Below are positions 2,827-37,771 of a stretch of 64,000 nucleotides of DNA, piece by piece. Under the pieces are notes generated by a model. The model ran no database searches. It saw nothing but the letters and a program-made list of their open reading frames with translations, and was not told the DNA's origin. The stretch's first letter is position 1; each line of letters starts with the position of its first letter. Made by a program: the position numbers and the translations under genes. The stretch is from Trichoplax adhaerens (taxonomy: Eukaryota > Animalia > Placozoa): positions 186,645 through 250,644 of the forward strand of contig NW_002060972.1 of assembly GCF_000150275.1 (NCBI RefSeq), written 5' to 3'.

Positions 2827-3744
2827 TAGCGGAATTCTGTCATAGGCATCGTCAATTGATGAAGAATTCTGTCATTTAGCGATAAGTCCATCATAATTAA
2901 GAAATTAGTAATTTCCATCTATCCTAAAACTCCAATCTGTACTTGTAGTAGGCACATTATGTAAGCCTTCAAGCTGTTATATTCTAGTATAAAAATGCTT
3001 GGAAATTGATTTCATAAAGACATGTGAACAAGTGAGATTTCCATTATAATAATTCAATAACTGCCACATGCATACAGATATCTACGATGTACCGTGAAAT
3101 TAATACTCTAAATGTGCAATAAATAAGCATCTTGAAAATCATCCGCGAGATGGGTTGCATTTTATTCGTGTTTATTCCTTTTTCTTCCATCTTACTTCCA
3201 TTTGCAAGATATCAACTGTTCTAGAAGATCACAATGGTCCGGCAGGTCTTACTCAATAATGCAAGATAGCTCCGTCTCTTTTTCTTTGAAAATAATGATA
3301 TTAACTATCAGCCAGTATTTTATAAAATATGAATGTTTATCAGTAAGATCATTTGTACTTACATAAAAAGTAATCTAATTAAACCAAGTAGCAAAAGTAA
3401 TCATACCAGTTATACAATTTAGGTTAAAGTTTATTCAGTTACTCGTATGTTGTTTTCCTCTCCTGTATGATTGTCGTCCGTACTGAAATTGATGCTTTAT
3501 TTAAGTATGTAACATAAACAACTAAAAAGGAAATTACAAAAAATGGGAAAAGAAAGATCTCACCTGCCAAACTGCTTGATATCTAAAATAGAAAGATCTT
3601 ACAACACTTCAGCTACTACATTATGACTGCGAAATTTCTATTTTATAAGGTGATATTTATTAGGATAGCTATAATAGTAATGGCAGATTTTATTACTCAT
3701 TGAATCTTATCACTATCATTCTACATTCGTTATTTTTGCTTTTA

Positions 3745-17860: not shown

Positions 17861-17879
17861 ATTATTTTTTGGGTAAATA

Positions 17880-20246
17880 CGCATTTTGCTAAAATTTCAC
17901 CTCGCGACTTGCCTCTAACTTCTAATAATGTCTACGTGATAAGAGAGGAAATTATAAACACCATTTGCAATCAATTGAAGATTGTCGATGAGTCATCTGG
18001 CCATATTTTAATCGACGGCATTTTTGGTAGCGATAAAACCATTGCTGCTTGCCAATCTATACACGAAGCGTCAAAAAAAGGCTATTTTAAATCAAACGGT
18101 TGTTATTGGATGAATGTTGGTAAGTTTGTAAATTAGCATAATTTACAATTCCGTTTAACGGTTTCAATCTTGAAGAAGAATAGCTGATATTGGAACTGCA
18201 TTTATTTTAATACATAAAAATAGTTGTGTAGTCGATGAAATCGAAGAAAGATATAAAATATCATTCAAACTTAGACTTCTGCTTAATGATAACAAGTGCC
18301 TAATTTTCAAATTTCCATATCCCAAGTAAATAATTGAAATAGGATAAGCGTAGACATGCATTTTAAATACCTTAAAAGAAATTGATAATCGCACACTGTA
18401 TACCATACTGACATTTAGGTGCTAATCGTTACTTCTCTGCTCAGGTAATGTATCAAATAACGAGCAATTTGTTCAGCTCAAGATACTGGGAATAAGTCTT
18501 GGTTTAAAGTGGCAAGAATCCTTTCAATTTATTTATGAAATTTTTGCCTGTCTCCGTAGTTATGTACGAGGTGACTATTTTGTCTTCCTTACTCACTAAA
18601 TTTAGCTAATATTAAGTTACACTGCGATACTGATAATAAAAAATTAACTCTTTTGGAAATAGTCAACTATCCGACATACTATTTTTTGTTGATGGCATCT
18701 TGAAGAAGAATCATTACAACTATTTGTCGTTCGCTAAAGAGTCGATTGCGACTTCACGGTTTATGCATTATGAAAATGAGATGAGCCATCTGTCACAAAA
18801 CAGCTTTCGTGAACGTACCTTAAACTACTATCTACTCTTATGGTTCTCCGACTAACTCCGGAGATCCTCAGTAAGGGAAAACTAACTTATTCCTATACTA
18901 TAGTAATCAAGTCAAAATGATAGGTTTAGGTTAATCAATATCTTCATTACTAGCTTGCTTACGTTTGTACCAGTGTACTCTACGTTAGCCTTAGTGGAAC
19001 TGAGATTAAAAATTAATAATAAAGCTTATATACAGTTTCATATGTCAAACAAATAAGATCAGTGCTAATCTTTCACATTAAATTATAGAATATGCAATAC
19101 AGGCTTACTATAGATTCGACTAGATCGAGTGTTACATATTACTTGCCATAAATTAATATTACTAGTGCAAACTTCCGTCGCTTTGCTGACGGTTTACGAT
19201 AATGTGCTCATTTAACAGAAAGTATTATCATTTGATAGACCTGTCAGAGGTTCAGTAACTTTATACTGTATATCCACGCTGTATATTACTACGATAATTA
19301 ATAACAAACTCAATTAACAACTAGGTTGTTGTCGAGATCGGCAACCTCCATAATAACATTATTACGCATATTAGATCAAAATATTATTCATTTCGGGGCG
19401 AACTCCGTCACACCATCATTGCATCCGTTTGCGGGTTGGTATTTTAATTGAATTTTTGTATCTAATATGATGTTATGTTTGATGAATGAATATTAAAATA
19501 ATAATGCCATTGGTACGGCAGTACATACGAGTACATTAAACTTCACATGTATAAAGAGAATGTTTCTATAACTAACATCATAGTTGTTTACTGTGCTATG
19601 TTTTTCCAATAAATAAATCAGAGTTCTTTTAGAAGAATTTAGAATTTAGTTTCACCTTTCAATATAAAACAAATCTAATTAAGCACACGGAATTAAAGAT
19701 TTATACTACAGATAATTTCTATCAATTTATTTTCACATTTTGTTATCAAATAAAAGATCAAAAGCAATTTGATGAAAAATTAGCATTATATCGAATGCTT
19801 TTTCTGCGCATAGAAGCAACTAAGCTATGATGAATCGATAAAATTGCTAACACTACGATGCCAAGAGCATAATACTCAGAATTTACATGAAAAACAAGTT
19901 GTTAGGAGAATCATTGAAAGTTGTGATGGGCTACCATTGGCTATTAGTTTAATTCTGGGCCTGTAACTGAAAACTGAAAAAGGCTGAGTTAGAGTAGAAG
20001 CGACCCTTGAAAGTGAATCAGTGTCAATGAAATATGCAAATTATAGTTTCAATCTTCACGGAATGCTACTATTAAGCCATGAATCGCTGAAAAATAGAAA
20101 ATTATTAAAATATTAGGCAGTTTTACGCCAGTCGATATTCCTATTCAATCTATTGCATCAGTTTGGGGCCTCAATCTAGAAGTTATGAATCAGATCTTAG
20201 AGGAAATGAATGACAAATCATTACTAAAATATATGAAGGAAAGCAG
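17880..20246 (+). pseudogene. Apaf-1-like NB-ARC pseudogene (NBD-HD1-WHD)
   Basis: P-loop variant ILIDGIFGSDKT and CYWMNVG (to 18119); exon 18445-18570; Walker-B-like ILFFVDGIL and ATSR (18663-18790 plus 19418-19434); IIESCDGLPLAISLI and VDIPIQSIASVW...MNDKSLL (19870-20246) with three stops and a frameshift. Interrupted by a solo LTR. A possible CARD remnant lies at ~17010-17156. Confidence 0.85.
18791..19412. mobile_element. Solo LTR-like insertion, family B (622 bp)
   Basis: TGTCACA...GTCACA termini with a perfect 5-bp TSD CCATC (18786-18790 and 19413-19417). Removing it restores the exon frame and the GT donor at 19435. Confidence 0.8.
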
Positions 20247-20530
20247 GTAAGCAAGAAGTTTAGAATTTATTACGTTTCTGATGTAAAAGTTTTAAAATTA
20301 ACTACAGTGCCTTAAAAATTTCCAAATTATTCTTCTTGTTTGTAGATGACTGTAAAATAAGTTGTATTAAATAGAAGCAACGTTATGCTATTCTATATTC
20401 AACATGTAAAAAACATAAATTTTCACTGTATTCAGGATATAGCTAGTTACCTTAGCACAATGTAAGGTTGTAATAAAGGCCTAGAGGACTACTTAGAGCC
20501 TTTACTTCTTTAAATAATGTGACTTTTTTA

Positions 20531-20843
20531 ACATTAATAACATTCCAGTTATTGCTCTGTTGATGTAGAATTTAGACGATATAGATCAACTGTAGGTGTT
20601 GATATCACTACCCTACGCAATTTGCTTGAATTCTCTTATAAGTGGCACTTGATTCTTTCAATTTCTTATATTGAGAAAATAAAGAATTATGAAGAAGAGG
20701 TATTTACAACAACTTTACTCTATCATGCATAAATATCCTCGGTGATTCTTGCTCTGTAACTTGTAATCAGCCATCGCTATCGGTACGGAAGATGAAGATG
20801 CCAACCAGCATCATTATGATAAAGGTAAACAGGTAATATAATT
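20531..20843 (+). repeat. Coding-derived dispersed repeat, copy 2 of 4845-5152
   Basis: Alignment to 4845-5152. Confidence 0.7.
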
Positions 20844-23800
20844 TAATGGACGTAATCTACATTGCAGAAGTAGGATTATCATCAACATCGTCTATCTAGG
20901 TGCATCCTCAATCATCAAGGTGTATCCTTTACGGTATTTTTCATGGCTTTGCCCTTAATTACAATGGCCTTGATAGACATTACTCAAAGTATTAAAGTAG
21001 AATTGATTATGCCAACTTTGACTAATTACAGATAGTCAACTTCCCAAGAAGATGGTGAAAAACATAAGGAATTACTAAGATGTTAAACTGACTAAAACAA
21101 TACATGTTACGGTCAAAACCCGATATTCGGCCAATACGATAGTTTGATAGTTTGTATGTGGACAAGGTAGAGGAGTATGAATGAGAAATTCAATTTGATA
21201 GCAACATTGGGTATGCTAGCGCTATGCATACAAAGATTGAGCTATAAGAATGTTGATCATATATATTAATATGCTCACTGACTGGAATAATAAGGTCTTA
21301 AATGAACTGAATGATAATCAAATGACTAATTACGAATCGTATGGTTACCGCATACTGTTTCTCTATTGAAACCTTTAAATGAAGCAAAATACGTTGCAAA
21401 ACCGTTTACCATCACTTGTTTGACTTTAGCAGTGCCAATAAATGTTCTTAAACTATGGTAAGCTCTAAAAGTGTTTTCAATTTACCGTTCCTAAATTCTA
21501 ATTTTATTTGCATGATAATAGCTCAAATTCAAAAAGTAATTCAAAATAATTTATTGTTGTTTCTTTCTTCGCAAACGGTGCTGTTACATTATTCATTAAA
21601 TTAATGAAGTCAAAGTGAATAAGCTGGTCGCATGACAATCGAATAAATTCCTTTTCCTACTTTCCGTTCCTATCTCACTCTTTCCGCCTTTTTGACAGGC
21701 AAATTTATTACTTACTTTCTCTTCATCAGCTCCATTACACCATTAGTTTGTGTATCAAGAACTGTGTATCCCGTCTTTCCCAATAGATCAAGCAGGAGAG
21801 AACTGGTACGGATAAACGTTATCATTCAAAATTAATTTTTTAAGTGTTCATCCCAAATTCTCTATATTTATTTTCTTCCGTGTATTATATGCTGCATGTT
21901 TGTCATAAGTTTGACGCCCCTTAATTCCATTCTTAACTTAACATTACTCGATAGCCCATGTTCCAGTTTTTAACCTTCGCTTGTGATTTATTTTATTCTG
22001 ATACAGTATTAAATTTCATAATTGAACTTACGTATTGAAAGATATTTGTTTTAAAGCCTAATATTTCTTCACTAAGCATCAATAATCATTACAAATAATC
22101 TATCCTAGATAGAACAGCGCTTTACAGTACTTATTTTCATGCCAAAGTGCACTTCAAGGAAGCGAAAAGACATCCAAAAATGGAGCTAATACGTTAGCGT
22201 AAATAAATTAGATTGCCAACCCACTATCTTAAACGCAGAGATGAAAACACTTTTTCTTCCTAATATTTTATCGCTTTAGTCTTAAATAGCTTACAGCGAA
22301 TTTACTTTAAGGGTTTATGAATGATAATTAGGGGTTTATATAGTCCATCAGTTTCTTCGAATATGACTAGTATCATTTTGTGAAGTTGTACGCTCATGGA
22401 TAACTCGGTAGGTGACTGCAATCATTTCAAGTTATAAACACATATTTAGGTATAACTTTATCAGTACAATAATCTAATCTATGTTTTTCTACTCACTATT
22501 CCAACATCCAAAGATCATGCTGCACTTAGTTTTCAGTGGTCTGGGTCAGGCACCAAGCAAATGCAGTGATTTCAGAGTTAGAATTGTTCACAAATGGATC
22601 TTATTTATAACAGACTATTTGGCCTGATAAGTTGTCCTTTTACTACTATTTCGACTCGATAAAGCGTACACGATTGACATAAATTTAGCGGATTCTTCAC
22701 GTATTTATGTCACAATTTCACTTCTGCGACAAGGTAACGTACAGTAAAAGTCTATAAGTAGCTACTGACTTAAAACGTCCTTTTACTTAACGTTAAACAC
22801 ACACAGCAAAAGACTGTAAAGATGAAACTTTTATTAGCAAAGATACATCTATAAATTTTTACCACCACTGAACTCAAATGTTCCCGTTTATATTGGAAGC
22901 TTCTAATTTATAAGCAACTACAGTGTTCTTATTATACCTTACTAGGAGAAACATCTCGAACTGAGATGTTCCTTACATAGCTTTTCTATCAGTAAATATT
23001 TTAAATCTCTTACTCATACTTAATCTAAATCTAAGCTCGTAGGTTGTCTAATTCAACTATCTTCAACTAGAACTTTAATCATCTTACTGCTATCTATCAC
23101 ACAAGAACAATTAATATTGAATATGCAATGAACTATTACAAACAACATCCATGTTAAGGCATTACTTATCTTACCTAGCACTACAAATATGGATATTCTC
23201 CATACTAGCTACTACTGTACTTAGTAAACTATCCTAATGACAAGGCAACACCGTAATAATTTAAACATATTATTTGTCTCAACAAAGGATACAAAAATAA
23301 TAATTGTAATGTATTTGTGATGTTACTATTATTATTTAGTTGTCTTACTGCAGTTGATGGCTTATAAGAAGTTAAAAGAAGACTATTATTCTTATAGCCA
23401 CTCAATATTTTTTTAAAGTTAATGCAAGTAATAACTGGCTTTGATGAAATAGAGTACGAGTGCACAATTTTAGCGATATATCAGGCCATACTAACTTATT
23501 TCATTATCATAGTTTGATGCTTTGATGAAAATATTTTTCATCTTCTATGAGTAACATATGCCAATATTAGCTTATGTGCGTGTATCCAGTGCGGTACTTC
23601 TTGCATGCATTAATCTTTATCTTTGGCAAGCTCGTTGTCAATCGTTCTATTTCTTGCATTATTCAACCTTTGTTCTGTCTAATCAAATATTATATACGGA
23701 CCTATTAGAATTGCTAACATGTATTATGTAGAAACATATCACGTTGCCGTCCTATGTATCATTCGTTTATTAAGTATAAAATGGCCATTCTTACAACTGC

Positions 23801-24295
23801 TGACTGCAGTCATCGCCAGTGCAAAATTTAAATTATCAACATTCAATGGCTACCAGTAGAACTGAAATGTTACAAAACGCTTATATTTTTTTTTCAGCTG
23901 AAAAATTAACCTTAAAGTAAATACAAAATGATCATTTTAGATTCTTTCTCCATCGTGCTATAGCGACCATATCAATCAGTCTACTCAAAATTTCAATTTT
24001 TGCTCCTAATATTACCGCAATTGTCAAGTTTATCCATACAATGAAATCAATTAAATGTTTATCTAATGATATAACAAAAAGTTTAGTCTAAAAGAATCAT
24101 TGTAATGCTGTAAAAGAACCATAACTGCGATATCTGGCTGAAACTACAGTTATCCTCTAAAACTTAGTATTTCATTTTCGCCATAGCTAATTTTAATTCA
24201 CATCTGGTGTACGTATATACTGTATGTAATGCTCCAAATTTATCTTAAATTGGATCTTGCATATTTTTCATTTAGGAGTAAGAACTACATTTAAA

Positions 24296-27200
24296 ATGGT
24301 TGTAAGCAAGTATATTAAAAGTGTGATCGACAAAAATTATTTAGAAATAAGGGCAATAGTCCCTTTGGTAGATATATCGTATGATTTGCGGGCTATACAA
24401 ATCCTATCCAATGAAGAAGTTGAAAAGCTAAGAGATGACTGTAAATCTGACAAAGAACGAGCCTTTGAATTCCTAAAAATACTGGAATCAAGCAGTGACG
24501 AAAATTTTTATCAATTCTGCAGCTTACTAAAAGTGAGTAATATTCGAAATGTTCAGAAACTTGGCGAGCGATTAGAAAAAGAGGCCTATAAAACTACAGA
24601 AATAAAAGGTAACCTTATTGCTTGTCAAATTAGGTATCCTTTTCAAAGTATTTATAACAAGCTTTCGCTAACTATTTCAAAAATATCGCTAATTATATGC
24701 TTTACATTCATTACATATTTTTATATTAATTTAGAACACTCTAAAAATCATTATCAGGTACTGAATAACCTACATCAATCAATAGAAGGTAATAAGGATC
24801 GTATACTGCTGTAACGTAGAGTTCTGGAATTTGCATAATTCGTTCTCTGTTTTACAAATCAGCCGATTGTTTTACTATGGAATTTCACTTTGTGTATTCC
24901 ATAATTAAGATTAATGCAGATGCAAAGAGGTATCTCTCGGTTTTATTTTCACTCATTGTGCACGTAACATCGTTCTCTTTGTATCTAACTGCTAGAAAAT
25001 CCTATTTTGCATCCTTTTCGCAACATGATATCCAAGTTGCTCGATTGGAATTCACCATCCTATACATCATCCTCACTAATCGGTGTGTTCTCTAACATTA
25101 CAGATATTAACAACTCGCTTTATTTTTCTTTTCCTAACTTGCATGAGCTGTCCAGTTTGTATATAGCCTGAAATCTCCCAATAATTTATTAAATTTGCAT
25201 TCAGTTAATAAGGATAATATAAGTTCTCAACGACAACAATAAATCTACGGTATAATTATGGTCAAAGTGATGGTTGATTAATATTATAATAAGTTACATC
25301 TTTCAGAATGAATACAATTAAAAGACTACTTTTAAGCTCACGTAGATTACTATACAATTAATCGTTCAATCCGAGAATTTCGTTGTTTGATACAGGATTG
25401 TAATTTTAAGATAACTAGCTAACTACAATTTCGATCTAGATGGGACTTTGGAATCAAGTTTCAATTCTTTGGATGAAGATAAAATGCGATTATTTGAGCA
25501 GTTGGCTGTATTTAAGCGAGTCAATATTCCCATTCAATCTGTTGTATCGTTATGGAACTGCAATCAAACGAAAGCTCATCTTTACTTAACGGAAATGAAT
25601 AATAAATCATTACTTACTTACGAGTATGATGCAGACAAGTAAGTTTAATCAAGTTTCGGAAAGTTAAGTTAATTGAGGGATCTCCAATTTTGTAATGCGA
25701 GATATTTAACATACAAAGCATGACCGAAAGTGTAGTTGCATATGTATTTGGTTATTAATATGGAATGTACAGATTTAACGAGTCTAAAATAATTTAATAA
25801 CTATTTTAAATTCATTATGGCTGTATTTGCACGTCGAATAAGCTTGATGTAGCTTGCTTTATTCAATCTTTTACCTACAGAGCATACTTTTTTATCTACC
25901 TATTAATATACTTGAATTCTATTTATAAAGGAATCATGATAGTTACGATAATTGGTTGTTCTAATTTCTGACTACATAGGCTTCTATTCAGTATTAATTC
26001 TCCAAATACTGTACAGAATATGATCAATCGTTAGTTATACAGTAGGTTGATAATATTGCGCCATTTAGGTTCGTGTAATTTTTTATCGTTTTAGTAAACG
26101 ACGTCGCAAAATACAATTTAACTCCAGATGTCTTTATTATACAACTCTGTCAATCTATATTATGTATTGTGTTCTCTCCAGTAGTCATTACATGAGCATT
26201 GTCTAATGCACAGAAGATATTCTACACAGTAAATTCAATTCTAAGCCTCTTCGATTAGGCTCTCAGATTTAGTGAACTCCTTTTATTGAACTAGCTATCG
26301 GTCTTTTCAATTTGCTACAATTTTATCTGATAGTAAATTATGATTATGATTACGTTTGACGGTAAATTATGATTTCCTATTCTCTAAAGTAATTTGTTTC
26401 TGTGATCCAATTGATCTGAAATTTCCATCCTATATGTTCTACTCAATAATATGAGTCAGTGCTATTAAATAGATAGTTTTACATGCGCTATACAGTACCT
26501 GCATTCATTCTCATGCAACATAATGCAATGCAAACAACACTAAAATGAATAGCCTTGCATTAACTACTGTATATAGTATTAATTCCTTTTATTTCCGTTA
26601 CTTTGTCAAGATCTTACTGTGTTTTACACGATTTGATGGTGGACTATCTACACCAACGACTCTACTCACAGACATCCAGCCAAGATTATTGCAAAATACT
26701 AAACAAAATGTTGATCGATGGTTACCGTAAGCAATGCGATGGACGGTGGAATACCTTCCATGATGATGGCTATTTCTATCTTAATCTTATTTATCATGCT
26801 TTAATAGCTGAAAGTAATGAAGATCTTCAAACTATTATGACTGATTTCAATTGGATGAAATGTAAAATCCAATCAGACAAAACGATCTATAACCTCGTCT
26901 GCGATTTAACAGACTATATCGACTATCTAAAGGAAAGAAAAGAGGTACCATACTGAATTGACGTTCTTAATTTGCTAGAATGGAAAGATTGATTACTTTA
27001 CAAGCGCTTTTTCTCAAAATAGTCCATAACCAATATCGTTTTAATGGTTAATTTACATTCAGAACGGGAAGGACCTTCGTCAACTCGTGGTGCTTCTCAA
27101 GCAACAACAACCTCGCCTAGATGCTGTCGATGCAGATATCATTAAAATGATCTTATGGGATGATATGTCAGATAGTTGGATGAAAAAACGAGCTTTACAA

Positions 27201-30200
27201 TTAGCTAAGGAAAATGTGCGAAATGGCGATGACAATTTAAGTTACTGGAGCATGTCAGAGTAAGTAAACTACTTCCAATTTTATCAATCCATCGTGTTAC
27301 TACCTACTGTAATTTACATTATACTGCCTGTTCTGACTTGCAAATAGGTGTTCAACTGGTGCAACAACGACTGAATATACTTATGATGTATGCCAACGAT
27401 TCGGTAAGAATGAACACGACAAATTTATATCAGTTTCGAATCCCGACTTTGGACCTTTGCGAATAATTGGTAGTGAAAATAATGGTACACAAGACTTGCA
27501 AATTGTGGTATGTTGGTATACGATAAATAAATGCCTAAGGTTAATAATTGACTATCGTTGAAATAGTGCTGTAAACACAATCAAATCAGTCACAAAGATC
27601 GACTCACAAACTGCCAATAAAATCAATGCTAATTACTTGTTACGGCATCATGCCATTGATGTCAATTCTTCACCCATTCCACTTTAGTTGAATCGATCAA
27701 TTAAGATCTACACATTAACATCTTGTCATAGCAGCATCAGTCTGTTCTGTCTGTCAAGCCATGCTACTGTGTACTGACTGTGTAGTCCATAGCTACCTTC
27801 TTTGGTTGATTCAGTGTTTGACATACGTTGATGTAGATTAAATTGAATGGAACGCAATTAAATAGAACTATTTTGATAGCATGTTGATACGATGAGATGA
27901 AGCCAATGGTCGCTCACTATTGCAATTGCATTAATAGATTAAAGATTATCAAACATCAAAAATTGAACTTAAAATATCTCCATATACCTGGATTGATAGT
28001 GTTGAAATCTCAGCTGACGGTCGGACTGTAGCCTTCAAGTCTAATGAGGTAGCACATTGCAATTTGAGTATGATGGTAGCTTTACTTAAGGGATAAATTC
28101 AAAATTGATTATCATCAATGTTGAGTCAATGATCTATATTGCAATTAGACCGCTAATTAGTCTGGAGACAGTTCGAAATTTGCAATCTATTCTGCTGCTA
28201 ATAAAAATACAGTCGTTGTTTATATCATTCTTGATTCATTTTCAACATTCTTAAATAATATCTTCATTCATTTGTTGAATATTCCTAGTGGATCGTTCAC
28301 GATATCGATAAAAATAAAGAAATAGACTTTGCTAAAAACGAAGAAGGGAAAGTCATTAAAACTGATTTTTGTTCGTTACAATTTTGCCCTGCTGTATCTG
28401 AAACCAAAGTCATCATGACACTCTCTAAAGATCGCCGTGAAGTTACGGTTAGCAGTGAATATGCATTTAAGTAAATATTAAACATGCAAAGCGATAGAAA
28501 TCTGTTGCGTTCGACTGTAATATTAGATTTGGAAGATTGAGGGGAATTGCATTAGACCTTTGAATAAGCGAATACTATGCCAATACAACATACGATATTG
28601 TCAATGGGTACAAGTGCATGATAGCGTTCGTGTCTTGTTGGGGTGGAGAAATTTTAATGAATTTGGTAAAAGTCGACATACATCTGACGATCCGTTAAAC
28701 AAGATTAATGAATGGCAAATTGAAGTAAGCTTCCACTGACTAAAAGGAGTAAAGTACTAAATTGTCTCTTAGAGATCTAATTGATAGAAGCTACTTGTAT
28801 TAATTTGACGGATAGATATGGCATGTACAGCGATGGACTTGTCTATCATTGAAAGTACCTGATTACATCCATGCAAAGGATGATGGTCGGTACTTTGCTA
28901 CCAATGATTCTAAAGAAAGTTTGTTCTTGAACTTCATCAATACGCGTATCTACCTTGATGCAACCTATATAATATTAGCATATACAGGTTCCAACCTTGA
29001 AACCAATGGTACAATTGGTCTGTTAAAAATGAAACAATTTGGAAAAATGGAATTTGAAAATGAATTTCGGCCAATATTACATCATATTCCACGAGTTGAG
29101 AATATTTCGGTATCAGACGATCAGCAAATGATTTTCATTTACTTCGCGCGCGCTCGCGATGAATATTATCGTCGTAGTTATATGGGTACATTTGACTGTC
29201 GTGAGAATAAGGTTAGTGCAATATTGGGTTACTCATCATCATAAGCATAATTCGTCCTAAAGTAGATCTGCATAATATTTTATTGTGCAGTAATACTAGT
29301 CCTATATTGTAATACTGTGATATATGTAGAAACTCATACTTAAAATGCGATGTTGTCAAGTCCAATCTTGTGTTCAAGTTGAGCAATCTGGTCCACCAAT
29401 GTTGATTCCTGGTAGTAATCGATTGCTTATTTATGATCGCTCTCAAACACATAATGTATATGAGTATAATTTACAAGGTAAGTGATGATGGTTCTACAAC
29501 AAGTGCAATTTGATCATGCCTACATTCATGGTCACAAGATCGTTTTCATTAAACTAAGGCGATAAAATTGCTTGGCAAGATATCCCTCAATCAAAATCAT
29601 ATGATGATCTTAAAAGATCTGAAATTACCGTCCCCGAATCTACCGTACCCGAAACTTCCGTCAACATATTCAACGTAGGTTAAGCTTTCATCAACACAAT
29701 ATGTTTGGAGTAGCTGTATCGACTCTATACTCAATTGAATTGTTGATTAGTTACAGATGATCGAGTTTCTAGGTATAGAAGATTGTAGAAAGCACCGAGA
29801 ATTAATCTATCAACTCTTAGTAAAAGAATCGAATGATACAGCATTTATGTACATACGATACAGAAAGAAGGATAACACACTTATTTTCATGCAACATAAG
29901 ACAGTATGTTGAAGTGGATATGAAAATGACTTAAGTATTTTTGAACAGGAAATGATAAAAATGAGAATGCTTTTTAACTAACATAACAAGTTATTGAACT
30001 GATTTTACAATTATGTAGGAGGTAAATTGGTCGAAGGATTCATTTAATTGATTTATTTTAGATGCTGTCCCAAAATTGGATAATAACCATTAGCCTTACG
30101 ACCGGAAAGAAGATAATTGATCGACCTGCATGTATTGCAAAAGCTAATATTGAGTACTTTGATGATGATTATCTTTATGCTTGGGAATGCGAGGAATCTA

Positions 30201-31222
30201 ATTCAAACTCGTATAGCTTCAAAGTAAGTATGATTTTATTCTACTTTAATCTTCTTTCTAAACTCTAAACGTGTACAAATTGACTGTTCAGTTTCATGTC
30301 GACGGACTTATTGGAAATAGCCTTGAATATCGACTTTGACGTCCATTGCAAATAAACCATTGCAAATGGAGACGATCAATAACGACATTTTCAATTTGAA
30401 TTTATTGTAGTGTTATAAGATTGGAGATGGTGAATATCATATGAAATTACTGCAAACCATAAGATACAAACATATGGAAAAATTAATCTTTAAAATAACT
30501 ATGAATTACAACTCTAATGGAGCCAATTATAATCCTACGATTGAACAATCGTCTTTTTCGAAGGAGAAAGTGTTAGTTGATGCATGGGGAGAGAGAGATG
30601 CCAATATGATTGCCAATCTACCGGAAGTAAGTCATATTGATGTTGCATAATGCTCGCAGTGATACAGTCAATATGGAAATGATAAATTGGGTGGATGGCG
30701 GATGATGACCACTGTAATGAGTTGATTATGAGAGGAGCTTTACTTTAGTCCATAATTGATCCTTACATTCAATTTAATTCATTATAGAAATATCGTCATG
30801 AAAATTATTTTCTACTACTGGAAAATGGAGACCATATAGCAGTAAGACAACGATAACAGGATACAATCGATGATACTTTATTGTTGAACGTATGTTGTGC
30901 TAATCATAAAATTAAATACCTATAGATAATTGCTAGAACTAACCAACTATTCATGAAAAGATACAAAGACAATATCAAATACTTCGACAGTCGCACCCAA
31001 TTCTTCAACCCTGAAAATTTATGGTCGGACAAGCATTTAATCCTGTACGAGTATGATCGAGTGCAATCCAAATTCAATATTTATAATGCTCAAACACTAC
31101 AGCTACAAATCATTCTACCATTTACTCACTTCGGTGTCGCGGACATTCAGTGGAATCTTCAACAATCTCAACTCATCATTAAGGGTTTTAAGGATTACTG
31201 CTTAGTAACCGTCATTGAATAA
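24296..31222 (+). CDS. Apaf-1-like protein: CARD - WHD - HD2 (APAF1_C-like) - divergent beta-propeller, lacking NBD/HD1
   Basis: 17 exons: 24296-24608 (CARD: MVVSKYIKSVIDKNY...ILSNEEVEKL...RAFEFLKIL...FYQFCSLL), 24735-24788, 25419-25638 (LFEQLAVFKRVNIPIQSVVSLW...NKSLL), 26611-26944 (LHDLMVDYL...DDGYFYLNLIYHA...TDFNWMKCKI), 27063-27259, 27348-27507, 27938-28048 (SVEISADGRTVAF), 28289-28447, 28527-28724, 28816-29211, 29330-29477, 29559-29674, 29751-29903, 30062-30223, 30411-30626, 30788-30841, 30926-31222. Total 3288 nt, ~1095 aa, no internal stop. An optional 87-nt phase-1 exon lies at 24996-25082. Confidence 0.85.
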
Positions 31223-31715
31223 GGATAAACAAGAAAAGAAGCCATTTATTGGTTAAGCATCCGTTCTAGGAGAAGAGTGTTGATTTGCTATATTGAAGAA
31301 TTGCTAACACTGTTGTAGTGATTTCAGCTAATTACAGTAGTTTTGTGTGGGCAATACAGTGATAGTATGTAGTATAGAACTGGATTTCTTAATAAAGTAA
31401 GTGTTGATAATAGGGCTAACAATCCATACACTACAACTGTATAGACTGTATCGATATAATATTTGCATGAAATATTTGCGTGACAAAGAGAAATGGATCG
31501 GCTATGGTTGTTAACACAAGCAAATATTGATGGCAGTCTAATACTGTAGACAGGGATCTCTCTAGCTAATCTTGAATTCATGCAAAATAATCGACATGGC
31601 TAATTTCAATCCTTGAAAGATGGATCATCCATTTAATGAGAGAGTAATTATTAATAAACTAAATCAAAATTACTTCAATAAATGATGGATGGTGGATGTG
31701 TGTACACGTGCATAA

Positions 31716-32185
31716 AGCAAACCCCCAATGTCAGTAAAACGAATACCCCCAAAATTAATATAGTAAACCATCATTAAAAGTAGTGTAGTCCATGGGGTCA
31801 ATGCAATTGTTGAGTTATTTGCAAATCTATTACAAATCGTAGTTAAAGAAGGACTTAAAGAGAAAATGAAAACTTCTCTAAAAAGGCGTTGGTGTAAAAT
31901 AGGATGAGAAAATAAAAATAATAAAAATAGGGATAGAGAAAATCATTTACAAAATTGCAGTCTATCATTAAGCATCCCATCTACTGTACAGCAAACCCCA
32001 AAGTCAGTTAAAACAATACTCAAAAATAGCGCAAAACAAGACCAATAGTATTGCAATCCATTGGATAAATGCAATTGTTGAGTTAGTTGCATGTCCATTA
32101 CATATCGTAGTAAAGACGGACTTGAAAGAGAAACTATCTCAGCAAGTCATTGGTAAAAATAAGAAGATAAGAAAATAAAAATATT
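31716..32185. repeat. Diverged tandem duplication (~275-bp period)
   Basis: agcaaacccc.a..gtcagt...aatgcaattgttgagtta.ttgca...atcgtagt.aaga.ggactt occurs at 31716-31920 and 31990-32185. Confidence 0.8.
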
Positions 32186-33828
32186 ATTTGTTTTCATTTT
32201 CTTACAATTGATTATTTATTTTTATTTGGGAAAACAAAAATAGAATTACAAAAATTCCAATTCATTTGCATCATTCTACCATTCAGTCAATTGTGGAAGT
32301 GGTAACAGTATATCTTCAGCATCATGTCTTCTACAACAATAATTCATCATCGTATATATAGTACAATATCATTGGTCAATTATTATTAACGCATTCTCGC
32401 AAAAGTTATTTTATAGAAACTACGTTAAGAAATCTATGTAAAAGATATTTCATAAAACTAGGTTAAGTATAATTAAGCAGTTTATTACATTACATAGCAC
32501 AACTAAAATACAAAAGCCAAAAATTATCCTAGAGCAGCTCGGCTTAAATAAATTATCTAAAATACAGAAAAGAATACAATGTCATCATATAATTCTCACA
32601 TTAAGTAATTAGATTATAATGATAACATATTTAAATCATAGTAACACTGAAACAAACAGAAAAAGAAAAGAATCACACGGTTTATATTGTAACATGATGC
32701 ACGATTTATAGCATATCACCAATATACTCACATAGTACAAAAAAAAGTTATTTAATTTAGTGAAGCTGCTAGATAAACTATTGTTATCAACATGTTATAT
32801 AGAAGTGAATTAGATATAACTTGAAAATAATACCAATATATAGGTAATGTTTATGATAATTCGAATATGTTGATTTCATCTTCGTAGAATATGATATCAA
32901 TCATAAAATTCATTCTCATAGTAAGTTCTGTAAGTGTTCAGAGACGTATTTCCTAATTGTTATGCTGTAAATAAGTTAGATAACTATTTAAGCAGCAACG
33001 CTTTTCCGTTATTCTTGTTCTTAGTCTTTCTTTTCTAAAATCTGTTGTTCTAAGAAGCTCTTCTTGCCTGCCGGAGCATGTTTTATTATCATGTAGTATC
33101 TCAACCGATAGAGAAATAGTTATGAAATCCGCTGTTATAAAATTGTTTATGTGATCTGCTAGCTAATTACAGTCAATAGAACAGGTTTTATTAGAGTGCA
33201 TATATCCTGTTATTCTATAGTATATCGTAGTAACAGCAGATAATATTGTTGTGCTAAATAAACATACTAGAAAGAGTAAACTATCAGCTACATTACACTA
33301 TATGTAGAGTATACTGAAACTAATGAAACTATATTAACTACGGTTTTACCTTTATAAAAACTTCGGATAAGTACCACCTGATTTTGCAACCGTAATGCAA
33401 TTTTAAAACATTATATAGCGAGTATAGTACTTTACAACATACCCATTAACAACTCAATTATAATTATGGTTGTATTAATAGATTATCCAGTTTAGATATT
33501 TTTTATATATAATCAGCATAAACACTCATGCTCAACAGGATACAGCATATTGACAACTATACATGTAGAAATATTTGATCAAATCTGCGTTTACGATAAA
33601 TTCGAAAATTTGCGAAATTCATTAAATCTAAAGTCTGGTGAGACAATAAGATAACAGCTTTCGCAAGTATATTAATAAATCTAATGCGCCAAATTATGTA
33701 ATTTCTACGTTTCCAATAGTATCACTTTCCGTGCGCATAGAGATTATTTTTATATTTAATTACTTTATATGGAAGGATAGCATTACAATGTAATCATGTT
33801 AACTACTAATTTCTTGATAATTTACCTA

Positions 33829-34730
33829 GAACGGGCCAGTCAAGACCTTATTATGTAACTTTACAAAAGCCATCTTATTCCTAAAATTAAAGGCAAAATC
33901 TTATCGAAAGGTTTTAATGCAAGCTATGCAGGAAGATTTAAGCGAGTTGGTTCAGTTCTATGAAACCATGGCCTCGTACTGCAGACAAAGGTTGGAAAAA
34001 GATACTGTTGCTGAAGGCGGACAAAATCCGAATAACCTTAATCAGCGTCCGATCATCATTGAAAAAGCGGTTAGTATAACCGGCTAAGTAATTGCAGAAA
34101 CTGGATACTGTCTCAACTTACTTCATTCAAGTAACATTGAATTAGATAAAAGCTATTATCTCGAATAAAGTGTATTGTAACAAAGTACGTCCTCCTAGAA
34201 ATACTTTAGCGATATTGAATACCTTTTAGTAAACAATAAAAGTACTGGAGATAGTGTAAAATATAGAATTAGTTTAGATTTTAAAAATTTGGAATTCATA
34301 CGTTATTGAAATTGACTGCGATCCTACTGTTAGTTGACTAAAGGTAATATTGATCGAAATATAGACAACAATATGCGGAAATAAATTACTGGAAGCCAGT
34401 GTTTTGTAAATATCACAACTATAAGTACTTATAAAATTTTACGAAAATCTGATATTGAAGGCCTTATTTTATTGGACATGCACTACTTTAGTTAATGATG
34501 GAAAAAGCAAGAGAAAATTTGCACCAAAAAATGGAAGCAACTGGAAAGCAGATTGATAATCTACTTACTATTCTTCAGAATGCAACAAAAGAGCTTACTG
34601 CTTAGGAAGAAAGTGATTCGCACTGTAATAAGCCTAATACCACCCTACTGAATTTATCATCGCGAAATGATTCCCTTATCGCCAAAATTCTTCATTTTGC
34701 AATAAATATAATCGAAAGTATATATTTAGT
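33829..34730 (+). pseudogene. Decayed helical/coiled-coil coding exons, possibly guanylate-binding protein (GBP) C-terminal region
   Basis: Exon-like 33829-34069 (ERASQDLIM*LYKSHLIPKIKGKIL.../QEDLSELVQFYETMASYCRQRLEKDTVAE...IEKA|gt) and 34492-34730 (LMMEKARENLHQKMEATGKQIDNLL...*). Paralogous to 58730-58966. The GBP assignment is tentative. Confidence 0.45.
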
Positions 34731-35157
34731 ATCCTAATAGCGGCATTCACGAACGTTTATGAGTTATCTTCATTTCAGCCCATACCAATATATTTTAAAC
34801 TACAAATTGTTACTATCAATAGATATCAATTGAATAATTAAAGAGGAAACGGTACGGTATTCGTAATCTAATAAAAGAGCGACCTGCGGTGTAAAAGTTT
34901 AACCCGTAATGATCCCATATTGAAAGATAAATAGACACAAACGGTAATAAATTTCTATCCCTACGGAAAATATTTCCTTAATTTGCTGATGTAAACAATC
35001 TGTAACTTAATACGAAGAAATAAAGCTTCAATTGCACAACTGCAAAAAGTCTTCAATACTTTCTTACTCCATCGCTTCTTAATTGAATATTTCAATGTTG
35101 CTACGAATATGCAGCAGCGCGAAGGCTTCACGACTAGAAGAAACTAGAATGGCTATT

Positions 35158-35594
35158 TGTTACGATGCGTAAGCTCGTCCTAATTATAATTATTGAGTAA
35201 TATTAAATATTGCTTGTGTGGATTGACGTTTTATTAATTGTCATTTCTTCATATAACTTGTTTAACCAGGAGTTTCTGACGAGACTATAAAAGGCTGATG
35301 CCTGAAGATTCCTTTTTAGTTCGTTAGTCGGTTAGATAGTCAACTAGTTTTCAATTGATATTTAATTGCGAAGACTATAATCTTGGGTGCCAAGATTCCT
35401 TCAGTAATAAATGATAGTAAATCTCTGACTATCTCGTCTACATCATCTGTGACGCTATAATTATACCATAGTATTCGGTTGTTGGAACTGAATTAGTTGG
35501 TGATATAGCTAATCTCGCCTCTTTAAGTTAGTAAGTGGCGTTCTCCGCAAGGATTGGCGTGTGTAGACTACTTTGTCACTAGTGGTGTGTGACA
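35158..35594 (+). mobile_element. Solo LTR, family A (437 bp)
   Basis: TGTTAC...GTGACA termini, perfect 5-bp TSD CTATT (35153-35157 and 35595-35599), internal TATAAAA and AATAAA. Second copy at 6375-6750. Confidence 0.88.
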
Positions 35595-35628: not shown

Positions 35629-37771
35629 ATAAATAATTGATATGAATCATTTTCAAATAAATTAACATTTAAAGTAGCCATAGACAATGATCCTCAAACA
35701 GTCATCGAGATATTAGATTTAGCATTGGCTTGCATAAGCGATATTCCAGTTGTGGCTCTGCTAATAAAGGAAATCAACGATAATGAATATAATTATAAAC
35801 TCAAGGTCAAATATTAATCTCGTGTAGATTTACTAAAGTATAATAATTTCCCTAGAAATAATTGAGCAGAATAATTTTATTGATAATTAGTAGATAAATA
35901 AATACGAAGCAAAACCATCTGCAAAATTGTTGTACTATTCCATACTCTATGACTATAATCGGTGCTTCTTATACAATGATTTAAAAGCTGCTTTAGTAGT
36001 AAATTTTAAAGATAAGAAGCCAAAAATGATATTTACAGAGGTAAATCTTACTATAGGTCGACTAACAAGTAGCCGACAGTACATTGGTCTTTTAAATTAT
36101 CCACTTATACTTTAGTAAATAAACATTATCGCAGATTACGAGAATGAGTAATTTTGCTTGGTTACAATATACTTTCAAAATATAAGTTAGCTATCATAAA
36201 TGTAATCGAGAGTTTAATTTTAACTTCGATTAATGCATATAAGTTGTCAACATTCTGAGTAAAGAGGGGAATGGACAACCCGAGGAATTGCTAAATTACG
36301 ATATTCCTCGGTCATGTATTGGCCGATATGACATCACATCAAGATAAAGAGAAATTGATAATATACTAATTTTCATGGTAAAATCTTGGGTATGTTATAC
36401 CAATAGTTGTTACTATTTCCTAAGCATAGTTTTGATTTACATACATAAATTACAATGCTCGATCTTGCAAGTAGGTTAGAAGCACGTTTATAGTAAAAAT
36501 TTTATTAACCAAGACCAATTACACAATTATTTCTTTTAGGATGATCACCATGAAGCAACCATGTTGATAATCACTATAAGCCTTACAATCAAAGAGAAAA
36601 TGATTTATCGGCTGGACTATAAGTATAAATGGCTTTAAATACTCATCGTTGATGATTGCTATCTTTGCACAAGACAGGAAGAAATAGATCCTAGCAGCGA
36701 TAAGGATCCACAGAGCATTAATGTAGTAAACATTATTTTTGAACACTGTTTTACCCGCATAAACATTTAATTTAATTTACTTTAAATTGCCACACGAATT
36801 TAATACAGAAAGGCTTACTTTGTTGTCTTTTCGATTTATCCTGCCTTATATTTATTTATAAGATGACGTTGATCAATATGAAATTATATTATAACCAAAT
36901 GATTTATCTCCATTCTAAATTGATTTTAGTGCTACAAATTTGGAGACGACAAAATGGAAACAATTTCGTAAGAAACTTGGCCGTTTCCGAGTGGAGGAAT
37001 AATATTTAAAATAACTATAAATTCTTTTATAACTGGTTATGAACCCAAAATTAAATACTTGCTTTACGAGGAGAAATATCTCGTGGATGAAATATTTGGA
37101 CATTATACTGCTCTAATTGTAAGTTGCAGTTTGAATATTCAGGATAAGGGGAAAGGAAGTGACCCATTCGATTTGAGGATAGATCATAATCCATTAATAG
37201 ATTAATAAATAGCAATTTGCATATTCTTCATTACTATGTTTTGATTTGTAAGTACATTGTAGGAAAATTATATGCTAGCAAATAACGAAATCTATATATT
37301 AGAAAATGGAGATCATTTAGCGGTAAGAAATGTTGATATTTAATTAATACCATAGGATTGAATGAAAAATGCTTTGTTTTATCCTACTTATAAAATCGGT
37401 AAAATTACTTCTTTATAGATATTAAACCTTTCCGGCATGATAGTGACGAAAATATGCAAGAACTATTTCATAAAGTTTGATTATGAAGCTTCTATTTTGA
37501 ATAATGATAATTTATGGTCGGAAAACCATTTTATTGCATATAATTGGAACACGTTAAATGTTAGAAACTTTTCTTCAGGCAATCTTATCAGTATTTCTAC
37601 TAAAAATTGTTCAAATCTATACATCTATGATGCTAAAACACTAAAGTTACAGATCAATCTACCGTTTACTTACTTTGAAATATATATGATGCAAAATGCA
37701 ACAGTCAGCAATCCTCACTCATCGTTAGCAACCGACATGATAAACATTGTTTAATAAAACACATTTTATAG
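35629..37771 (+). pseudogene. 3' remnant of a third Apaf-1-like gene (propeller region)
   Basis: Exon 37263-37322 YILENGDHLA matches LLLENGDHIA. Exon 37419-37771 NLWSENHFIAY...IYDAKTLKLQINLPFTYF matches NLWSDKHLILY...IYNAQTLQLQIILPFTHF, with a 2-bp frameshift in an AT run near 37682. The upstream exon-like pieces are degraded and less certain. Confidence 0.75.

Follow-up and report, generated by a model that had tools for sequence, protein, structure and literature searches.

Positions 24296-31222 (+) of a 64,000-nucleotide stretch of the Trichoplax adhaerens genome (RefSeq assembly GCF_000150275.1, contig NW_002060972.1, forward-strand positions 186,645 to 250,644; this whole stretch is called the window here, and positions are given in its numbering) hold an Apaf-1-like gene with a CARD, a winged-helix domain (WHD), an HD2 domain and a double beta-propeller, and without the nucleotide-binding domain (NBD) and HD1. 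The ancestral gene lost this essential part by deletion. What is left is still transcribed and spliced in frame, and we think it probable that this deletion derivative is young, evolves under relaxed constraint and is drifting toward a pseudogene. The assembly searched (105.6 Mb in 1414 contigs, AT-rich) holds about 40 Apaf-1-like paralogs, with stops in many of the copies, in agreement with the Apaf-1 expansion described in placozoans (Kamm et al., 2019; PMC6321704). That study screened for NB-ARC and NACHT domains, so a gene without an NBD lies outside its set (PMC6321704). No other family member in the T. adhaerens genome was seen to have the same NBD-less architecture.

Domain searches were made exon by exon and on the public protein models of the gene (P0173) and of its ortholog in Trichoplax sp. 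H2 (P0160); the joined translation served for frame checks and alignments only. The first coding exon (24296-24608) matches the Pfam CARD profile with an E value of 3e-3, below the curated cut-off; it is 76% identical to the CARD exons of paralogs. Full-length paralogs share 43-51% identity with it in their N-terminal, CARD-bearing part, and one of them (P0163) matches Pfam CARD at 1e-4. The winged-helix piece, from 25415, matches APAF-1-like_WHD (E 2.5e-3; 24.4 bits in P0173, slightly under the cut-off of 27) and retains the LHD motif at its end, and APAF1_C, the HD2 profile, is matched in 26564-26953 (E 1.8e-9; 38.1 bits against a curated cut-off of 22.8). Of the profiles that the sequence-only reading of this DNA had listed for checking, CARD, WHD and APAF1_C are thus present and NB-ARC is absent, P0173 giving no Pfam NB-ARC match even at E<=10; Pfam WD40 gave no match. 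The beta-propeller region is recognised structurally instead. AlphaFold2 was run on P0173 with 31 family sequences as input; the model, of moderate quality (mean pLDDT 68.6) and read for topology only, shows a CARD-like helical bundle at residues 1-100 (pLDDT about 83), a low-confidence linker at residues 101-151 that corresponds roughly to exons 2-3 and is predicted to be disordered over exon 2 (pLDDT below 50), a helical part at residues 152-355 that is the WHD and HD2, and an all-beta part from about residue 380 on. Its best Foldseek matches are the human apoptosome and mouse Apaf-1 (3j2t, 5juy, 3sfz) and Dark, followed by double-propeller WD40 proteins, and a profile of the Trichoplax family aligns to residues 19-593 of human and mouse Apaf-1 (E 1e-56). 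The predicted architecture of the product is CARD, linker, WHD, HD2 and tandem propellers.

Two RNA runs were used, a declared H2 RNA-Seq run and a T. adhaerens run guessed to be RNA, a guess supported by its GT..AG joints; such joints are seen in both RNA runs and are absent from the DNA runs, and the contigs carry no abundance information. Junctions 24608/24735, 24788/24996, 25082/25440, 25638/26611, 26944/27063, 27259/27348, 27507/27938, 28048/28289, 28447/28527 and 28724/28816 occur in both RNA runs, and 29211/29330, 29674/29751 and 29903/30062 in one run only; 29477/29559 and the last three introns, for which no RNA junction is listed, were placed where a single GT-AG choice keeps the frame, with the H2 and JGI models as further support. 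The resulting model has 18 exons, all with canonical splice sites, and 3354 nt that encode 1117 residues with no internal stop in T. adhaerens. From the letters alone, 17 exons and about 1095 residues had been proposed, with a splice from 24788 straight to 25419; that model, too, is in frame, but its junction is not seen in RNA, and the actual path runs through 24788/24996 and 25082/25440 by way of an 87-nt exon that had been missed and that is also used in the public models P0173 and P0152. The junction from 25082 to 25440, which had been offered for checking, is the one through which transcripts pass from CARD to WHD in frame: the coding lengths of exons 1-3 (313+54+87 = 454 nt) end in phase 1 and join the last two bases of a GAT codon. 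The features of the gene are as follows.

21777..21805 (+), 3' end of an alternative exon of the 5' untranslated region (UTR), with a GT donor at 21806, spliced to 24276; the loose end of an RNA contig of run X15 maps exactly here
22515..22733 (+), 5'UTR exon joined to 24276, of which loose ends of RNA contigs show about 219 nt
24276..24608 (+), exon 1, with the start ATG of the coding sequence (CDS) at 24296 and CARD residues 1-104; Pfam, RNA junction 24608/24735, AlphaFold2
24735..24788 (+), exon 2, linker; RNA junctions in runs X19 and X15
24996..25082 (+), exon 3, 87-nt linker exon, present in the paralog subfamily; RNA junctions 24788/24996 and 25082/25440, 80% homology to paralog L001
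25128..25412 (+), deletion scar in intron 3, 286 bp, ending with the TAA at 25412-25414; blastn against paralogs
25413..25439 (+), remnant of the former GLPL/WHD exon (LANYNFDL), now intronic, holding the unused acceptor before 25419
25440..25638 (+), exon 4, start of the WHD, entered via the new in-frame acceptor; Pfam APAF-1-like_WHD, RNA junctions
26611..26944 (+), exon 5, end of the WHD (LHD motif) and HD2 (APAF1_C); Pfam 38 bits, RNA junctions
27063..27259 (+), exon 6, end of HD2; TGG>TAG at 27178 (W368*) in the H2 assembly; RNA junctions, H2 alignment
27348..31222 (+), exons 7-18, tandem beta-propeller sensor region; RNA junctions, gene models, AlphaFold2 and Foldseek
27348-27507, 27938-28048, 28289-28447, 28527-28724, 28816-29211 and 29330-29477 (+), exons 7-12
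29559-29674, 29751-29903, 30062-30223, 30411-30626, 30788-30841 and 30926-31222 (+), exons 13-18
31220-31222 (+), stop codon TAA

Both 5'UTR exons were searched for an in-frame ATG upstream of 24296, and none was found. The public entry for the gene (TRIADDRAFT_61954, XP_002117919.1, B3SCF6) is a "CARD domain-containing protein" of 1020 residues whose first 256 residues are identical to the RNA-supported model, so that the public model is already NBD-less. The same entry removes 27 conserved HD2 residues (26726-26806), where no RNA joint is listed, and misses exon 29751-29903 altogether, both junctions of which are RNA-supported, as well as 20 residues in exon 11. The H2 ortholog, TrispH2_006300, is annotated as a hypothetical protein comprising the C-terminal 718 residues only; its gene model (L008 10001-14043) leaves out the entire 5' half of the gene, and 31 residues are missing from exon 11. 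No mention of TRIADDRAFT_61954, B3SCF6 or TrispH2_006300 was found in the literature and supplements searched.

The absence of the NBD, first noted from the letters, is confirmed: between 24609 and 25415, motif search and tblastn find no remnant of NB-ARC, P-loop, Walker B or GLPL in any frame, and the NB-ARC P-loop NTPase domain is present in the NBD-bearing paralogs. In all other paralogs the exon that matches the GLPL/WHD start has an open frame of about 145-146 residues, against 75 here, and also carries NB-ARC positions 152-247 (GLPL); the distance from the CARD exon to the WHD exon is 2-5 kb in the other paralogs and 1.1 kb here. By blastn, 24652-25127 corresponds to positions 679-1158 of paralog L001 (80%) and 25413-25659 to positions 3167-3407 (81%). 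Between these two blocks L001 has 2.0 kb with the exon of the P-loop, another two NBD exons in which Walker B lies, and the GLPL/WHD exon as far as its middle; in their place the gene has 286 unrelated bases, homology stopping at 25127 and resuming at 25413. The point of resumption lies in mid-exon and bears out the earlier view that the 5' half of the GLPL/WHD exon is gone; inspection of the sequence also confirms two details pointed out in the same reading, a TAA at 25412-25414 and an acceptor AG just ahead of 25419. The 286-bp filler is not a repeat, having one other match in the genome, a partial one of 66 bp. Its 3' part resembles the intron upstream of the P-loop exon in paralog L005 (3271-3361), which makes a single deletion from intron 3 into the exon the simplest history. 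The deletion is common to T. adhaerens and two H2 haplotypes (the H2 assembly and a second H2 RNA allele), and hence is not private to the haplotype of the window, a point on which the sequence-only reading had left its case to depend.

We propose that one deletion of roughly 2-3 kb, from intron 3 to the middle of the GLPL/WHD exon, removed the whole NBD, with P-loop and Walker B, together with HD1. The phase-1 donor of exon 3 is now joined to a cryptic AG at 25438-25439, fortuitously restoring the frame of the WHD, and neither the promoter nor the 5'UTR exons nor any other splice site has stopped working. The resulting mRNA encodes CARD, a predicted disordered linker, WHD, HD2 and the double beta-propeller, a protein that, having no NB-ARC ATPase, should be unable to bind nucleotide or to build the hub of an apoptosome. 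Since shortly before the divergence of the T. adhaerens and H2 haplotypes the gene would have drifted without effective purifying selection, an expressed pseudogene in the making whose open reading frame (ORF) presumably survives only for lack of time.

Recent constraint was judged from substitutions between the two lineages. The T. adhaerens CDS differs from the H2 assembly by 10 substitutions, 9 nonsynonymous (two of them in one codon) and 1 synonymous; one of the nonsynonymous changes is the TGG>TAG at 27178 in exon 6 (W368*), a premature stop in the H2 assembly that explains why the H2 gene model begins at the next codon. With the alleles of RNA and DNA contigs included, the count rises to about 20 nonsynonymous and 5 synonymous, over 2686 nonsynonymous and 665 synonymous sites, for an omega of about 1, although some clustered RNA-contig variants could reflect gene conversion or chimeric contigs. 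Four NBD-bearing paralogs served as controls (L003, L007, L013 and L014 of T. adhaerens against L009-L012 of H2) and give, pooled, 19 nonsynonymous to 20 synonymous changes and an omega of 0.23. The difference from the controls is significant by Fisher test at small counts (p=0.03 for 9:1, p=0.018 for 20:5). Exon divergence, 0.30%, and intron divergence, 0.45%, are not significantly different (p=0.33). In the control paralogs themselves, the T. adhaerens-H2 divergence is 1.48% at synonymous sites and 0.72% in introns, a roughly twofold difference, again at small counts.

The age of the gene and that of its lesion are to be kept apart. The gene itself is an old and distinct member of the family, long maintained as a paralog before the lesion: its identity to the sister clade is about 60%, against 78-88% among the members of that clade. 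Tajima relative-rate tests do not agree: the one against P0004 is significant, those against P0154 and P0157 are not. They indicate at most a mild excess of rate and do not discriminate between a functional and a decaying gene. The lesion is another matter. Among all single substitutions in the CDS, 5.7% create a stop, and under a neutral model that includes the local indel rate the probability of an intact ORF is 0.42 at a per-lineage divergence of 0.2%, 0.18 at 0.4% and 0.03 at 0.8%, so that an ORF without disabling mutations fits no lesion but a young one. No disabling mutation was found over the 1117 codons of the T. adhaerens frame, the pairwise T. adhaerens-H2 distance at the locus is about 0.4%, and one disabling mutation in two lineages is the neutral expectation. 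If the deletion abolished constraint, then the lesion is not much older than the split of the T. adhaerens and H2 haplotypes. Searches for orthologs in other placozoans returned proteins from T. adhaerens and H2 only, and a metagenome scan was empty; the truncated form is known only from this very close pair (99.2% identical DNA), and conservation across species was not found.

Several observations speak against decay. In T. adhaerens the 18 exons together form an uninterrupted ORF, the splice sites are canonical without exception, and transcripts spliced in frame come from both lineages. The deletion is older than the divergence of three haplotypes, which in intron 2 differ from one another by as much as about 1.5%. 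Absolute dN (0.34%) is the same as in the control paralogs, dN relative to intron divergence (0.74) falls within the control range (0.24-0.89), and the high ratio of nonsynonymous to synonymous changes rests on very few synonymous changes, largely one. The second H2 RNA allele (X19) reads TGG rather than TAG at 27178, around which the H2 DNA contigs break, and W368* may be heterozygous in H2. Moreover, immune-receptor families that are functional also show high dN/dS and polymorphism for loss of function. The sequence-only reading had offered both a functional decoy or adaptor and a recent deletion whose ORF has not yet decayed; the neutral-looking pattern (9:1, nonsense change included, against 19:20) favours the latter, and the former has gained no positive support beyond an ORF that is intact and expressed.

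A functional NBD-less Apaf-1 paralog that regulates its NBD-bearing relatives is the strongest alternative, and one that we hold to be unlikely. Such a protein might present a free CARD to CARD-caspases without oligomerising, as a dominant negative, or cap the NBD of a neighbouring protomer with its WHD, or act as a sponge for propeller ligands, and by analogy with other immune-receptor clusters it could be kept as a polymorphism of the presence/absence type. It is favoured by in-frame spliced transcripts with their own 5'UTR exons in both lineages, by the intact ORF of 1117 codons, by a deletion common to three haplotypes and by domains predicted by AlphaFold2 and Foldseek to fold as in Apaf-1 around a disordered linker. 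The CARD-only caspase-1 decoys of mammals are a precedent, as is, in plants, the truncated helper NLR NRG1C of Arabidopsis, which is reported to antagonise its full-length neighbours (bioRxiv 10.1101/2021.01.27.428547). Against it stand the 9:1 ratio with a nonsense allele in H2, an omega of about 1 where the paralogs give 0.23, and the lack of this architecture in the rest of the family; the preserved frame is weak evidence, since a cryptic acceptor falls in frame by chance about 1 time in 3. In its most specific form, in which the translated protein is a CARD-presenting, ligand-binding, non-oligomerising brake that segregates as a presence/loss polymorphism between Trichoplax lineages, the proposal is doubtful.

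It is very improbable that the relevant product is instead a CARD-only protein made from intron-2-retaining transcripts, in which case the remainder of the gene would be irrelevant. An unspliced contig spans 24759-25023 in both RNA runs, and reading through from exon 2 meets a stop after 8 codons, which would give a CARD-only product of about 130 residues if translated; the same runs hold spliced junctions for intron 2, however, and the unspliced contigs may be pre-mRNA or DNA carry-over. That the NBD exons exist and were collapsed in or dropped from the reference is effectively refuted, although close paralogs on small, gap-containing scaffolds make the family difficult to assemble: there are no Ns in 24200-26000, Logan contigs from two DNA runs (two studies, two organism labels) span 24449-26811 colinearly with 4-5 mismatches, the independently assembled H2 genome (L008, NOWV01000071.1) is colinear with 19283-35157 at 99.2%, and RNA joins exon 3 directly to 25440. 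The mis-assembly across 24800-25420 that the sequence-only reading had wished to exclude is rejected on these grounds. Run X6 shares 10 of 12 listed variants with the H2 assembly, which identifies the organism labelled B as H2. Separately, DNA run X1 (T. adhaerens, 2025) and the H2 assembly have in common variants at 25145, 27665, 27827, 28123, 28484 and 28763 that are not in the reference window, and these are polymorphisms shared across both named lineages.

The gene is flanked by remains of the same family, which fit a cluster in turnover and, together with the stops in many other copies, count in favour of decay.

17879..20247 (+), upstream NBD-only fragment of a distant paralog, decayed, without CARD or C-terminal part
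17879-18121, 18640-18792 and 19814-20247 (+), exons of the upstream fragment with P-loop, Walker B and GLPL/WHD, respectively, the last with 3 stops
35900..37732 (+), downstream decayed fragment of the C-terminal propeller region of the family, with 4-10 stops in its matches

The first two exons of the upstream fragment are still open; its GLPL (19928) and ANYSF (20036) motifs lie in one exon, as had been read from the sequence, and that exon is interrupted by stops. We considered whether this fragment is the displaced NBD of the gene and rejected the idea: the fragment overlaps the retained WHD half-exon, is only 42% identical to it and carries stops, and the 5'UTR exons of the gene lie downstream of it, which also counts against displacement. 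In H2, the contig holds an extra duplicated or gapped stretch inside the upstream fragment (L008 1-2096 against 18946-19562), and about 437 bp of the window, 35158-35594, are absent from it.

Two further observations come from other loci. An intron of the H2 ortholog of TRIADDRAFT_60338 (L012:6117-6611) holds an element of about 470 bp with at least 40 copies in T. adhaerens at 89-95% identity; it looks like a young interspersed repeat family, and no copy lies within the 64-kb window. A cluster at C1404:1696788-1812296 holds about a dozen exons 30-41% identical to the CARD of the gene, with no WHD or HD2 matches nearby, and may be a separate array of CARD genes.

The gene shares descent with the Apaf-1, Dark and CED-4 scaffolds and has its domains (CARD, WHD, HD2, double beta-propeller) in the order of Apaf-1; it differs from them in that the NBD and HD1, the ATPase and oligomerisation core that defines the NB-ARC STAND family, are wholly absent. 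The mammalian decoys COP/CARD16, INCA/CARD17 and ICEBERG/CARD18 arose by duplication from caspase-1 and consist of a CARD alone. Like them, the Trichoplax gene presents a CARD without activating machinery; unlike them, it derives from Apaf-1 and keeps about 970 residues downstream of the CARD. With NRG1C it has in common that a paralog in a tandem cluster misses part of the canonical NLR architecture and is expressed beside its relatives, and NRG1C serves as the model of the way in which a copy without an NBD might interfere; NRG1C, however, is N-terminally truncated according to the title and here the deletion is internal, CARD and sensor are kept and recent evolution looks neutral. Like transcribed young pseudogenes in tandem immune-gene clusters, the gene has lost an essential domain to a large deletion, its substitutions look neutral, the sister lineage has a nonsense allele and decayed fragments lie on either side; it differs from them in that T. 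adhaerens retains a complete, canonical, in-frame transcription unit.

The placozoan Apaf-1 family is unusually large, and the gene is a warning for domain censuses that rely on annotation: the public records list it as a CARD protein in T. adhaerens and as a hypothetical protein in H2. If functional, it would be a natural domain-deletion experiment, in which CARD and sensor are joined without the ATPase switch, and an animal equivalent of the truncated NLRs that act as inhibitors in plants. If decaying, which we judge more likely, it would offer a well-dated snapshot of the death of a family member, with the deletion masked in RNA by a lucky in-frame cryptic acceptor.

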